Source of the DNA: Macrostomum lignano
Lineage: Eukaryota
DNA length: 64,000 nt
Direction: 5' to 3'
Assembly (NCBI GenBank): GCA_002269645.1
Contig: NIVC01001515.1
Span: 124,001 to 188,000 of the forward strand
Positions 10,601 through 16,600 of the stretch are shown here, in pieces (positions within the stretch are counted from its first letter, which is position 1; every line of letters begins with the position of its first letter). Made by a program: the position numbers and the translations under genes. Below the pieces are notes generated by a model, which did not search any database, was not told where the DNA came from, and was given only the letters and a program-made list of their open reading frames with translations.

Positions 10601-13600
10601 CTAAATACTCGTATATCAATGCTGAAAAATACTGTATGATCTTTCATAAAAAAACAAGGACGAAACTTAAGGCCGGTTCACATTATCGCTAGTAGCTCTG
10701 CGTGTTACATTGTTTAAATCAATTTTAAAATGGGTCTGAACAAATATGGTTGTAGCCTAGTGGTTAAAGCGTCGGACGCATGACTTGAAGGTCGGGGTTC
10801 GATTCCCAATCCCACTTAAACAATTTGTGTCCTTGAGCAAGACGCTTAACTATGCATTGCTTCAGTTCATCCAGCTGTAAAATGGGCACTCAGCATTAGC
10901 TGGGGTAGCTGGGGTGTGTGGCGACCCCCCAGTCCTTGAACTGAACAGCCGTACGCAGCCTTCAGATGCGCCGCGCAACCGGTAGCTGCGGCTGAGCTGT
11001 CGGTTGCACTTCTGCACATTAATAGGGCAGTTGCAATCAAGTATTATTATTTTTATTATACTTATTAAGCAAGATTGAGTCAACCAATCACAACTGGCCT
11101 GAAAATGAATTCGAGAATTTGAAGTTGATAAATGGGCTGCACTGTTTATCGCAATAAAATCAAATGAAATATAGAATGTCAACTTTTGACAATTGCTTGC
11201 TGCTTCTGTGCTAGCATAGATATCTAAAACTAAGAAAATACTGTTTTATTACTTCTCTTTCTCACGACACCGGAAAGTATGATGCTAACTGATGCTAGTT
11301 CGGAGCGAGCTGTTGGCTTAAAAAGCGGTTGTTATGGAATATATATTTAAAGTACGCGTATATCTTGCGCCGGTCCGCGAAGCTGCTAGTGCGGCCACAA
11401 TCGCTGTAGGCAGCGCCGCACTCTCTGTCCAAATCTTGTCAGCCAGCGTAGACGATGGGGCCTTGACGGCTTCTTCTCAGCTAATTGGTCCTTGGCCAAA
11501 TCGTCTGAACAGTCTGCTGGCATTGGATCCGATGAATTAGCCTGGTCAATGGTTTCCAATTGGGTCATTGGTTGCTCATCTTGCAGCAGCGCTGGTTCAT
11601 TTGTTTCATTGTTCGATTGCTTCGCAGTGTCCACTGGTTCTCCAGTAGAGTTTGGCTTGACCCCAGTCAGCTGCTGCTGTCGCCTGGCTGTTGTCTTCCG
11701 GTTAACCACGCGGACGAAGCTGATCCTGGGTGACCGCATCGGCGTTAGAATCCAGTTGCTGTTGTCACTGAAGCTCGGACTGTAATAATTCCTATTCCGT
11801 CCGCACCTTGTTCTTTTCTTTTCCTTTCTAGTCTTAACACGATCTTCTGTGTCGCTATCACCGTCAGTCACTTGCTCAGACTGAACCAGCTGGCCCTGGG
11901 AGAACCTTGGCGGCTGGCCAAGTCTAAGCTTTAGTCTCAGAGCAGCAGCAGTCGGACTACTTCCCTTTTCCGCCGCGTACAGCAGGTCTTGCATTTGGTC
12001 TACCGTTAAATAGCGACTCGATTCCACCGGGTCGACATTGAATTCTCGAGCTACGCTTAGTCGAATGTCTGGCAGTCGCTCAATTAAGCCAGTTGTAAAT
12101 GGAAAATCTATCTCCCTTACTAGTTGATATGTTGGTCTAGCTTCGTTCCGAGCGAATGTTGCGAATTCCTTGCTGTGCAGCAGAATCATTGTAGACATTT
12201 GCAATAGTTTAGCCGCGTTTCTCTGATAGGCACCACGACGGCTTGGGCTCTTGCACTGGTCCATCAGGTCCAGCTCTCTATGAGCCAGGTTCATCAGCAG
12301 CACCACTGCGTTGCGCGCGTCTCGAAGCTGCGGGCTTTCTGTTGCCAGCGGCTGCTCTGTCATGAAGTAGCCACGTTTGATGTACACATCGGCAGCTTCG
12401 GAGCATTGTCGGCCACTTTTTCCCTGCCTGTCCCGCTCCAGCGCATGGTGCAGGATGCGCACCGGATCTGAAGCGTAGTTGCCAGACTGCTCTTCGTCAG
12501 CTGCTGTTAAGCTGGACGACTTCCTGGCGCTGTTGTTACTGCCCGTGTTGCAGCAACTGCCCTTGGCTTCGGTGTTGCCAAGCGCAAATTCAAGGATTGG
12601 TGATTCAACAGGTCGGGGCACCGGCCTTCGGTATGCGGCGCTGTAGTCCAGGCTCTGCGCCAGCAGATGCTCCGGCTCAATGCCTTGCGCGCGGCCGCGA
12701 CGAAGCTGAGCGCGCGCTTCTAAGCACAGCTGTCTGCAATCAGAAATGAGAATGATCGTCTTCAGTATGCAAACGGCTGCTTGAGGCTAGTAGAAGGCTG
12801 TAACGCTTCTGGTTTTTCGACAATAGTTAAGGGTAAATTTTAGCTCGAATAGTTCCAATACTAACTCTGTAGTTTACGAAAAGTTCGCTGATCGTAAACT
12901 ACAGAAAATAAATATCGAAAATAAAAGCTAGCGTCCTGATTTATTTCCAAGTTTTCTGTCAAAACCAGCTTAAATCAAAGTTTTCTCATATTTTTTTGCG
13001 TCTTCTATATTGAGTTTTGCTGTCTTTTAAAATTAATTCTTTAAACTAACTGACCCGGCTTAAGGACCAGCCTGAGAGTAAAGCAACTTCGCTCTAAATT
13101 TCAAAGAGGTCTACGTAAAATTGTTCAGCTAATATGCGAGCAATCGAATAAACAAAGGATTCCTACTTGGCTCGCTGGTATCTGCCGTAGTCCTTAACTA
13201 GCTCAGCCAGAGTTCTAGCTCCTAGAATTGTTGGCTGCTGCTGTCGATTCTCCGGCACCAATATCAAATCGTCAGCGTCTAATATCAGCTCGCGGTGCTG
13301 TGCAGCATCTTCGCCAGGTACATTACCGCTCAATAGTTGCGAAATCGGCAGACGACCGCGAGGCCACAGCATTGGGTCGCGGGCCATGGCAGCGGCCAGC
13401 GCTGGCAGAGGATAAGTGGGCCGCTCGGTCAGCAGCAGCAGCGCGTAGTCCAGCCAGTCGGCCACGCGCAGGATTCGTCTCTCGCGCAGTCGCCTTAGCG
13501 GCATAGCCAGGGGTTGAGTAGCCGCCCAACCGTGGCGCAGCAGTGCCAGAGCGCAGTTAAACTTGCAACAGCGTAGCATTATCACGTAGACTGGGAATGC

Positions 13601-16600
13601 GTGCAAATCGCCAGTCTGTGGACTCTGCACGTGGGTTGCGTACTGTACAGAGTTTGCACTGTACATTGGCTCCTTGTAGGTGTCTCGGTAATTAAGCAGA
13701 GAATCTACGCAGTGTTCGTCCTGCGAATTTTTGCGATTCATTCTTGCGGTGTCTGTCATCAATTAAGCTATACGATTTATATTCTAATGTACATAAATTT
13801 GCGAAAATAAAATACGCTCTTTCTACTTTCTCGGCTTAAAGCGATTGAATAAAAAAAAATTGACTGCAAAGAGTTGAAACCAAATTTATAACAATTCTGT
13901 GGATTTCGTGTGCCTACTGGTACGTTGCTCTATTTGGTCACAGCGATAGTTCCTTAATCTACAGTCACTCCAGTAGTACCTATCTCAGATAGCTCACCTC
14001 GCACAGATAGATAGCAGCGGCCAGAGTAGTGAAGTAAAGTACAGCCTGTTTGTGAAACACGGGTGGTTGGTTGCTATGCGGTCCATGGTAGAGTCTGGGA
14101 TCGTCTGCCAGTTGATAATAAGCGTTGTTAAACAGTGCTGGCGTTAGCTCCATTTTGCGAATTATGCCTTCGATGCGATTGTGAACCAGCATGCTCATTA
14201 GCCATCGAGTGTTGGGATGATTGTAGCTGAAAAATTTCGGCACAGCATAATAGTGACTGCCGTCTAAGTCACTCAGTGGGTCCAGGTACTCCGGTGGGTC
14301 GGGCAGGTGGCGCATGGCCGACATTTTGATCGTCCGACTTCTTATTTAGTCTGCTCGCTCTTATTAAAACGATATCGGTTTTAAGCAAAACGCATGCTTT
14401 CTTTATTTAACTGGTTGGTCCCTGAGGCCTCTGGCTGGGACCATAGAGTTGATTAAGCATAGATGAAAGCTCACTATGAATCACTTGTCTGAGAAATATC
14501 TGAGGCTAACTTTGGCATATCACTACACCTTTTAACTTTCTATTTTGAAAAACCTGCACTCAATATTGACATCTTTGCATTCAATTTTGACAGTCTGTGG
14601 TATCGCTTGAGAAATTTTCAACCTGCAATTTGGACAAACTCAAATGCAATAATCACGATTTTCAACCGAAAATGACAAACTCCAACCTTTTATTAACAAT
14701 TTGCATTCAATTTTGACACCGGGGTACAAAACAGTGCCTTTTTCTCGCCGTCTATGGAACAAAACTTGTATATGTGCATCCATTTTTGACAGAGTTGTCA
14801 AAATAGGTTGAATATTTCTACAAGCGATACCACAGACTGTCAAAATTGAATACAAATATGTCAATATTGAGTGCAGAGTTATATAGTATCTGTGGTGCAG
14901 ATTTTTCAAAATAGAAAGTAGAAAGGTGTAGAGGAATCAATGTAGCAATGGTGGAAGTTGGAATTAAACTGACTATTCTATTGAGCATACGTATCATTTG
15001 ATCTTTGAATTCTTAAAAGCAGCAGAATTCTTAGATGAGAAATCCTCTTCCTTTATCTACGTATATAAATAAGTCGCCCTATATTTGTTACAAATCCCGC
15101 TTCTCGCTAATACATTCAGAAATATAAGGACTTCTTCAGGTTCAAAATTGATAAATTAGTTGCTGTTGCAGTTTTGATAGGATCATGATCTTGTCTCAAG
15201 GACCAAGGGGTTTTTGATGGTGCTGATTTCAAATTTAGGCTTCATTCTTATCTAGCTTCAACCCAAATATATCAAATGTAGCTTAAAGCCAACCACTGGG
15301 GCATGGGGAATGGGGGTTTTAGGGAGAGATTCTTCATGGGGACTGATTTTATCAGCCTAAGCTTGAATGGACGCATGGAGAGCGGAGACCTATTCAATCT
15401 TAGGTTGATAAAGGTCTTTTCGCGATAATAGTGCAGCGCAGAGATATCCTACTCGTTTGTCCCTAACGTTCCAGCAATCCAGCTACTTTCTTAGAATGCC
15501 AACAGCCTTCAAATCCAAATTAGTACACGATTCAAAGTAACGCAATTTTATCAAAGCTGTTTGATTTTTTTCTCTTTCCAGTTTCTCATAACCGCAGCGG
15601 ACGTGAAGAGCAAAAAGCAGTCGGGACTGGTGCAGTACCTGTCAGACTATTGCGCCTGTCAGCTTACGTGAGTATCTAGTAATCTACATTGGTCATGTAG
15701 GCGATTTTTATACACCGATAAACATGCATCCAGTCTTTATCAACATCAGGTACTTCAAGGAGAGCCTTCGGGTGCTGCAGCAGCTGCACTGCGAGATGCG
15801 CGGCCTAGCCGAATCCCTAGACGCGGCTCGATGCGAGCACGAAGGCGAACGGCGATCGCTTGTTAAACTGCGCGACGAGCTGCGAAACATGCTGGCGTCG
15901 GAGCGCGATGTTAGGGCTGCTTTTGTACATGCATTCCTGCTTGATAGGCCAAGCTTTAATCAGTGAATGGCAGCGCTCCTTTAATAGAGTGCTTCTACCT
16001 GCCAAGCTCTGGTCCTTCACTGAAGCGGAGCTGCCCTCTCCTCATACTTCACTGAAGCAGATCTGCCCTCTCCTCATGCTTCACAGAAGCAGATCTGCCC
16101 TCTCCTCATGCTTCGCTGAAGCGAGTCTACCCTCTCCTCATTCTTCACAGAAGCGAGTCTACCCTCTCCTCATGCTTCACTGAAGCGAGTCTACCCTCTC
16201 CTCATGCTTCACTGAAGCGAGTCTACCCTCTCCTCATGCTTCACTGAAGCAGTCTACCCTCTTCTCATGCTTCACTGAAGCGAATCTACCCTCTCTCCGG
16301 ACAGATACTGCAACTCTAAGTAGTGTATATTGATATCCGTGTTTATTTCTGACCCACAGAACGGTAGTGGCTCATCAGTTGCCTATTCCCTGCACCAAAG
16401 CCAGGGCAACCGAGCCCACGGCACGGCAAAGCAAGGCTACCTGTTGAAGCGATCCGGCAGTAAAGTAAAGAAAGTCTGGCAGAAGCGACGCGCCGCCGTT
16501 ACCAACGGCTGCTTTCTGTTGTACCACGCCGATGACAGCCTGGCTCCCGTGTCGTTGCCGCTGCTCACCTGTCAGGTATAAATTTCTGTCTGCAGCATGC

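Follow-up and report, generated by a model that had tools for sequence, protein, structure and literature searches.

How does one gene come to be carried on the opposite strand within an intron of another, and what kind of protein does such a gene make? The question is raised by a stretch of 64,000 nucleotides (nt) from the free-living flatworm Macrostomum lignano (assembly GCA_002269645.1, contig NIVC01001515.1, positions 124,001 to 188,000 of the forward strand), hereafter the window, in which an ArfGAP gene harbours a second gene, Mlig009405, antisense within its fifth intron. A preliminary description of the window had proposed that this guest is a spliced orphan gene and that its product, if real, could be a divergent ubiquitin-ligase adaptor of ankyrin repeats and a SOCS box with an extra helical domain. 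Taken together, the evidence set out below is best explained, with a probability that we put at roughly 0.6, by a real antisense nested gene that belongs to a flatworm protein family, has a non-enzymatic binding or scaffold role, and owes its nested position to inheritance.

Mlig009405 is a genuine spliced protein-coding gene. Three open reading frames (ORFs) of 114, 199 and 411 amino acids (aa), spread over positions 14324-11386 of the minus strand, join exactly through canonical splice sites (junctions 13998/13720 and 13167/12733; Table 1), as had been claimed, into a coding sequence of 2229 nt in which three exons bounded by GT..AG sites make up 742 codons and a stop with the frame intact. 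An in-frame TAA is read eight codons 5' of the ATG. The product is identical over its full length (100%) to GenBank entries PAA61890.1 and PAA67005.1 (‘hypothetical protein BOX15_Mlig009405g1/g3’); GenBank thus lists the gene already, under the name of a hypothetical protein, and its existence is not new. The annotation of the M. lignano assembly derives from a genome-guided transcriptome that drew on RNA-seq processed by StringTie/TACO, on a de novo assembly and on transcript boundaries defined by experiment (PMC5730564), and, because the annotation is guided by RNA-seq and the proteins are identical, the junctions that had been proposed match the published transcript model. At its longest, a frame free of stops extends for 466 codons in the guest region, against a median of 124 and a maximum of 323 in 300 dinucleotide shuffles. 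Alignment of the guest with its closest paralogue, Mlig022898 (P0002), continues unbroken over both junctions and that of the wider family over the first; the position and phase (0) of intron 1 are common to the four paralogues of the close group, and intron 2 is missing in P0002. No tandem repeats were found within the guest gene, and no transposase domains were found in its protein using Pfam. The whole guest gene recurs in a second genomic copy (NIVC01001989.1), with exons and introns unchanged and differences confined to the flanks, in keeping with the redundancy for which the assembly is known. Two other models of the protein in UniRef, both products of an older assembly or annotation, were rejected: the 1422-aa ‘Fungal_trans’ model carries an unrelated low-complexity N-terminal extension that is taken as fused junk translation, and the 726-aa ‘TPR_REGION’ model is mis-spliced, with the family-conserved DVYIKRG motif deleted.

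The gene that spans the guest on the opposite strand is publicly annotated as encoding 972/974 aa, with BAR_3, PH and ArfGap among its precomputed domains. Reconstruction of its exons from the window yielded a protein with Pfam matches to ArfGap (1.8e-31), PH (3.6e-12) and BAR_3 (1.1e-9), that is, with the BAR, PH and ArfGAP order of the ASAP/ACAP type. Exons 6-12 (15582..21039) encode the end of the BAR domain, then the PH domain, the ArfGAP domain, an ankyrin region and a proline-rich tail. At 1017 aa the reconstruction exceeds the annotated 972 aa by 45 aa, and therefore at least one exon boundary differs; since searches constrained to the annotated length gave many equal solutions, the exact host boundaries are to be read as approximate. 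A tblastn search that started from a human ACAP2 sequence recovered the exons for PH and ArfGAP but not those for BAR; using tblastn against the paralogous host described below, a homologous exon was found for each of host exons 2-7. On the plus strand the host exons to either side are exon 5, whose last position is 10434, and exon 6, whose first is 15582; the guest coding sequence (11386-14324, minus strand) falls between them, at distances of ~950 and 1260 nt, respectively, and so is wholly intronic and overlaps no host exon. The intron is rightly called intron 5, because five coding exons precede the guest when coding exons are counted, and public annotation and exon reconstruction agree on the spliced antisense gene nested in intron 5 of an ArfGAP gene that had been described. 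The host protein itself has a long proline-rich tail (19109-21039) like that of ASAP proteins, but no SH3 domain; the paralogous host keeps its SH3.

The origin of the nesting can be read from that paralogous host. The closest paralogue of the guest, Mlig022898, lies antisense inside a gene for a 1263-aa protein with the domain series BAR_3-PH-ArfGap-Ank-SH3, which is the ASAP architecture; at this locus (L003, contig NIVC01002156.1) the guest occupies 8001-10842 within a host spanning 1-17156. When the host reconstruction was used in tblastn, the paralogous host exon ending LQLQLCE was placed at L003 11742-11683 and that starting FFIKANDVKTKK (FFIKANDVK...) at ~7827-7693. Mlig022898 sits between these two exons, and hence in the homologous intron and in the same relative orientation as Mlig009405. 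The two hosts are themselves paralogous, with tblastn identities of 37-47% in the BAR domain, 58% in the PH domain, 81% in the ArfGAP domain and 46% in the ankyrin region, and the two nested guests are sisters with 89% bootstrap when a neighbour-joining tree is built from ten family members. Because the guests are sisters and share intron and orientation, host and guest were duplicated as one unit. The guest would thus have become nested in the intron before the ArfGAP gene duplicated, and the unit would then have been copied to give Mlig009405 in the present host and Mlig022898 in the ASAP-type paralogue with an SH3 domain; ancestral nesting followed by duplication of the whole unit is the simplest history. 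The antisense nesting of Mlig022898 in the homologous intron of the paralogue is new here. Mlig009405 and Mlig022898 are now ~35-38% identical, with open frames and family motifs kept in both. A clean host–guest pair that has been duplicated as one unit should be useful to students of how nested genes originate and persist, and such a pair is tidy, not a surprising kind of thing.

Other members of the family are differently placed. Mlig032244 and Mlig011744, sisters with 95% bootstrap in the same tree, are not nested; each has a ribosomal L22 gene upstream of it (L004 7637-14128 and L005 6796-14641, respectively). The homologue in Opisthorchis viverrini (L006 10001-12115) and Mlig028329 (L007/L008 10001-12103) are single-exon, intronless, stand-alone genes. 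The L22 neighbourhood shared by Mlig032244 and Mlig011744 is a case of conserved synteny in its own right. In addition, Mlig032244 is flagged in Supplementary Table 2 of Grudniewska et al. (2018; PMC5816591) as trans-spliced and neoblast-specific, and may form an operon-like unit with a dNK/TK2-like gene.

The guest had been described as an orphan, a description that no longer holds. In an exhaustive profile search that covered 1.84 billion representatives, 31 were found at E < 1e-3, of which 16 lay below 1e-10 and six below 1e-30, the E-values of the family ranging from 1e-135 to 1e-4. Among these relatives M. lignano accounts for eight or more paralogue groups, and cluster look-ups gave as members Mlig022898, Mlig032244, Mlig011744, Mlig014962, Mlig028329, Mlig027698/026327/021536 and Mlig004562. 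Trematodes contribute Opisthorchis felineus CRM22_000776, O. viverrini T265_03377 and Clonorchis sinensis CSKR_100623, together with hypothetical proteins of Dicrocoelium dendriticum and Calicophoron daubneyi, and a monogenean contributes a hypothetical protein of Protopolystoma xenopodis. A planarian homologue, Schmidtea dd_Smes_v1_1986_1_2 (E 1e-20), is listed for the paralogue Mlig032244 in Supplementary Table 2 of PMC5816591. All 20 name-bearing representatives that were looked up, of the 31, are flatworm proteins and all are uncharacterised; the remaining ~11 come from read-archive assemblies or fell outside the look-up. As far as its named members show, the family thus appears to be confined to flatworms. 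A word-indexed search reached much less far: from Mlig009405 it retrieved a single paralogue family, that of Mlig022898 (33% identity), and from family alignments it returned only the two starting proteins or nothing. Pfam hits to 7tm_1 and Exo70_C, in one member each, were set aside as coming from fused older models, the clearest of which is the 1219-aa P0025 with its G protein-coupled receptor label. The supposed orphan is therefore a member of a defined flatworm-wide family with two confidently folded domains, found also in liver flukes and other parasitic flatworms.

The protein itself is divided by family alignment and by structure prediction into two conserved domains, an insert and a tail (Table 1). 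The N-terminal domain (N-domain) of ~200 aa carries the motifs HPxTxW, YFQxxDxP, MF, LYLTPLxLAIY, YATxV, GD, PxxIAxRRExF, YRR, DxxDY and RP; in YFQxxDxP D74 is invariant and P76 nearly so, whilst Y106 and D197 lie in LYLTPLxLAIY and DxxDY, respectively. The central helical domain begins, in distant members, with SLFRRLARxAxYxD, and its R386, P428 and D432 are near-invariant. Between the two conserved blocks an insert (aa 240-380) is present in Mlig009405 and its four closest relatives, and distant members are without it. The tail includes a basic cluster resembling a nuclear localization signal (NLS) and a basic C-terminal helix (aa 724-737). With two sequences, AlphaFold gave an unusable model (predicted local distance difference test, pLDDT, 34); with a family alignment of 27 sequences the predicted template modelling score (pTM) was 0.62, and pLDDT was mostly > 90 over aa 30-230 and ~90 over aa 380-480. 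The confidence derives from covariation within the family, because two sequences gave only 34, and confidence of that origin would be expected of a real folded protein. In the model aa 241-283, 328-370 and 554-725 are predicted to be disordered, and the N-domain is formed of four helix pairs (37-47/51-60, 100-107/111-119, 153-159/163-171 and 198-208/214-221), each followed by a pair of beta-strands, such that long beta hairpins set the helix pairs apart. Neither a signal peptide nor a transmembrane segment was seen in the guest protein, and it contains no recognisable catalytic domain.

Comparison of these domains with known folds upheld the earlier claims in part. The two segments that had been called ankyrin-like are both family-conserved helix pairs and stand in register with two ankyrin repeats; membership of the ankyrin family, as judged by Pfam and Foldseek, fails. 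When the N-domain profile was compared by hhalign with consensus ankyrin sequences, two successive repeats aligned in register with a score of 24.4 (P 0.003, probability 9.6%), against 8.6 and 10.5 for reversed profiles, 17.7 for the best of 100 block shuffles and 13.9 for the C-domain of the family. Repeat 2 of the N-domain alone gave P 0.002 and repeat 3 alone P 0.085, and the two resemble each other with P 0.01. Sequence profiles gave no significant match in the PDB; the sole PDB sequence that the N-domain profile reached, with an E of 2.3 that is not significant, was a designed ankyrin repeat protein. With the Ank, Ank_2, Ank_3, Ank_4 and Ank_5 profiles of the Pfam Ank clan no guest match appeared at E up to 10, and one of the 27 members matched Ank, at E 0.23. 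No ankyrin protein stood among the top PDB matches when the whole model was compared by Foldseek with PDB and BFVD; these were designed helical repeats, STAG1, 14-3-3 and Nro1, the best at E 0.37. The ankyrin-like signal thus appears to be real but weak, and may reflect either a divergent stack with hairpin insertions of 25-40 residues or convergence. Similarly, the helical block that had been likened to MIT and TPR domains is a real conserved domain, whilst the likeness itself did not hold up, since there is no Pfam TPR or MIT match and Foldseek returned generic helical repeats (E 0.37-1.4).

From this anatomy we infer that Mlig009405 would be a soluble intracellular, non-enzymatic protein-binding or scaffold protein, which may bind its partners through the repeat-like N-domain and the helical domain and would carry a flexible basic tail. 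A number of points weigh against this reading of an inherited, nested scaffold gene. Transcript support for the guest is indirect, by way of the published annotation, and the two genomic copies are identical and therefore give no selection signal. Pfam detects no domain in the guest protein or in any true family member, and Foldseek with the whole model found nothing at E <= 0.001 in PDB or BFVD, which leaves even the fold class of the N-domain tentative. No family member has been studied, and the function given to Mlig009405 is wholly inferred; the polar invariants D74, D197, R386 and D432 could mark an active site and not a binding surface. A still more sceptical account would hold that the ORFs are non-functional, being a chance reading frame, a pseudogene in decay or a wrongly annotated sequence of transposon origin. 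The annotation is indeed automatic and names the protein only ‘hypothetical’, and the window is packed with repeats and has a KDZ transposase-like gene near by. Against such an account stand the frame intact over three exons and the stop-free run far above that of the shuffles, the homologues across flatworm classes with their conserved motifs, the intron position kept in paralogues, the covariation-driven AlphaFold confidence, and the lack of internal tandem repeats and of transposase domains, and it is judged highly improbable. There is very little chance, too, that Mlig009405 is a divergent adaptor of the ANK-SOCS-box type with an extra helical domain, as had been suggested, and serves a Cullin-RING ubiquitin ligase. 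The N-domain does give a weak in-register ankyrin-profile signal, and a string of the form [ST]L-x3-hydrophobic at aa 278-287 is conserved among the five closest paralogues; however, no SOCS_box (PF07525) match was obtained in 27 members at E up to 10, and the guest has no LPxP Cul5 box. Measured against the BC-box pattern [STP]L-x3-[CSA]-x3-[LIV] within a C-terminal SOCS box of ~40 aa, position 6 of the candidate is V, and position 10 (compared by eye in three paralogues) is G, A or D and so not hydrophobic. The ‘QLC’ that had been read as part of the motif is not conserved in paralogues, and the segment lies in mid-protein within one long helix (pLDDT 52-79) where a C-terminal three-helix box would be expected, and is absent from distant family members. 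No ASB or SOCS structure stood among the 50 Foldseek matches listed for the whole model, none of which was significant. Since the SOCS box is missing and the ankyrin assignment fails in Pfam and Foldseek, the entire adaptor proposal lacks support, and Mlig009405 is probably not a SOCS-box/Cullin-5 substrate adaptor.

The remaining alternatives accept the gene and differ on what it, or its position, is for. The nesting could be conserved since it is functional, the antisense guest modulating the host ArfGAP gene or the reverse, or the two acting in a shared pathway such as Arf-dependent membrane traffic. Two host–guest pairs have kept the same intron and the antisense orientation despite divergence of the guests, as this would predict; yet retention is also the neutral expectation, because an intronic gene has no easy way to leave, and other family members live outside ArfGAP genes, either beside ribosomal L22 or as intronless stand-alone genes. 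Passive retention is accordingly the default explanation for the conserved nesting, and a functional one is distinctly unlikely. Rather unlikely, too, is a role of the family as a stem-cell or germline factor, with Mlig009405 active in proliferating cells and possibly in the nucleus. The paralogue Mlig032244.g1 is classed as ‘Neoblast, stringent’ and ‘flatworms’, among few flatworm-specific entries, in Supplementary Table 2 of Grudniewska et al. (2018), and in the same study (PMC5816591) irradiation depletes it strongly (log fold change -2.0 to -3.0, false discovery rate 1e-46 to 1e-81), and S/G2/M cells show enrichment for it; the NLS-like cluster of Mlig009405 would suit a nuclear protein. 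On the other hand, Mlig032244 is only ~30-38% identical to Mlig009405, it shares the transcript cluster MligTCv3c-18137 with the dNK/TK2-like neighbour, a possible source of the signal, and the NLS-like cluster belongs to the tail, where conservation is poor. The literature, and its supplements as far as their tables were listed, yielded nothing on Mlig009405, Mlig022898, other family members or dd_Smes_v1_1986, nor anything on nested genes in Macrostomum, the neoblast data for Mlig032244 being the only functional lead, and an indirect one; this neoblast signature makes the family a reasonable target for RNA interference in a laboratory model. We attach only a small probability to a joint reading, in which the N-domain is a flatworm-specific fold with no solved relative and the guest and its ArfGAP host are functionally coupled, perhaps in proliferating stem or germ cells. 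The fold would then be either an ankyrin stack remodelled by hairpins or a new one, and the coupling would have been kept since the old duplication by antisense transcription or by a shared pathway. The inherited nesting of a scaffold-type flatworm protein gene accordingly remains our preferred explanation.

Table 1. Coordinates of the guest gene Mlig009405, its protein domains and its ArfGAP host in the window; a slash marks an exon–intron boundary.
Feature	Position	Strand	Remarks
Guest coding exon 1	13998..14324	-	ATG 14324-14322, aa 1-109; donor GAG/GTGAGC
Guest intron 1	13721..13997	-	277 nt, GT..AG, phase 0; acceptor TTCGCAG/GAC
Guest coding exon 2	13167..13720	-	aa 110-294, last codon split; donor CCAA/GTAGGA
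Guest intron 2	12734..13166	-	433 nt, GT..AG, phase 2; acceptor GATTGCAG/ACA
Guest coding exon 3	11386..12733	-	aa 294-742, TAG stop at 11388-11386
AATAAA, candidate poly(A) signal	11245..11250	-	136-141 nt past guest stop; read from sequence
Conserved N-terminal family domain	13352..14246	-	aa 27-232, interrupted by intron 1; alignments, AlphaFold
Conserved central helical domain	11920..12483	-	aa 378-565; family alignment, pLDDT ~90 over aa 380-480
Poorly conserved tail, predicted disordered	11389..11919	-	aa 566-742; pLDDT < 50, alignment
Host coding exons 1-5	7646-7783, 8976-9048, 9134-9279, 9898-10104, 10327-10434	+	most of BAR; some boundaries approximate
Host intron 5	10435..15581	+	5147 nt; whole guest inside, opposite strand
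Host coding exons 6-9	15582-15667, 15750-15909, 16360-16575, 16976-17291	+	reconstruction
Host coding exons 10-12	18084-18321, 19109-19763, 20329-21039	+	reconstruction; stop ends 21039

The surroundings of the two genes are unusually rich in long minisatellites, with units of 13-49 base pairs (bp) and up to ~100 copies, at 2093-5566, 44110-48442, 29600-32379 and some 20 further sites in the window; some are strongly skewed in G/C (GC skew 0.62-0.64 at 2001-6000 and 0.32-0.53 at 42001-48000). Several repeats fall within the host gene. A 24-bp tandem repeat (17309-18059; 31 copies, 98% matches) fills the intron that splits the coding region of the ArfGAP zinc finger, and read-through of it creates a spurious 597-aa ORF (16532-18325) of SPVLSIAH repeats, whilst a 32/96-bp tandem repeat (16015-16295) and a (TCTG)42 tract (16708-16876) lie in the introns flanking the PH-domain exons. 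On the minus strand at ~1-2002 (L002 22323-22939) an annotated neighbour, whose 777-aa product runs off the locus, has a KDZ transposase domain (PF18758); the cysteine-rich ORF at 1487-1981 of the same strand is probably the first exon of this KDZ transposase-like gene. On the 3' side of the host (23890-25387) a Q-rich ORF of 157 aa precedes one of 376 aa that is built from 23/46-bp repeats and is at best putatively coding.

How Mlig009405 compares with known systems can be stated at the level of fold, family and gene arrangement. With ankyrin proteins it shares, in the predicted model, a helix pair followed by a beta hairpin, four times over, and its LTPLxLAIY...LL and D....PxxIAxRRExF...L..G align in register with the ankyrin consensus TPLHLAA..GH..VV..LL..G; it differs in a repeat spacing of 45-53 residues in place of 33, in the length of its hairpins, and in the low hhalign probability and the absence of a significant Pfam Ank match or a useful Foldseek ankyrin match. 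With the ASB proteins, which are ANK-SOCS-box adaptors, it has in common only the general plan of an N-terminal repeat domain and then a helical segment; by profile, motif or position the guest has no SOCS box, and nothing in ASB proteins corresponds to its helical domain. Within the flatworm family Mlig009405 shares the N-domain motifs HPxTxW, YFQxxDxP, LYLTPLxLAIY, PxxIAxRRExF and DxxDY and the central helical domain. It is set apart, together with its four closest relatives, by the ~140-aa insert, which contains a long helix; Mlig009405 is also nested in an ArfGAP intron and has two introns of its own, whereas some relatives are intronless and stand alone. Finally, like other nested opposite-strand intronic genes of animals, the guest is contained in full by a single host intron, antisense to the host and free of exon overlap; unlike them, host and guest have here been duplicated as a unit, with the arrangement preserved in the homologous intron of either copy.

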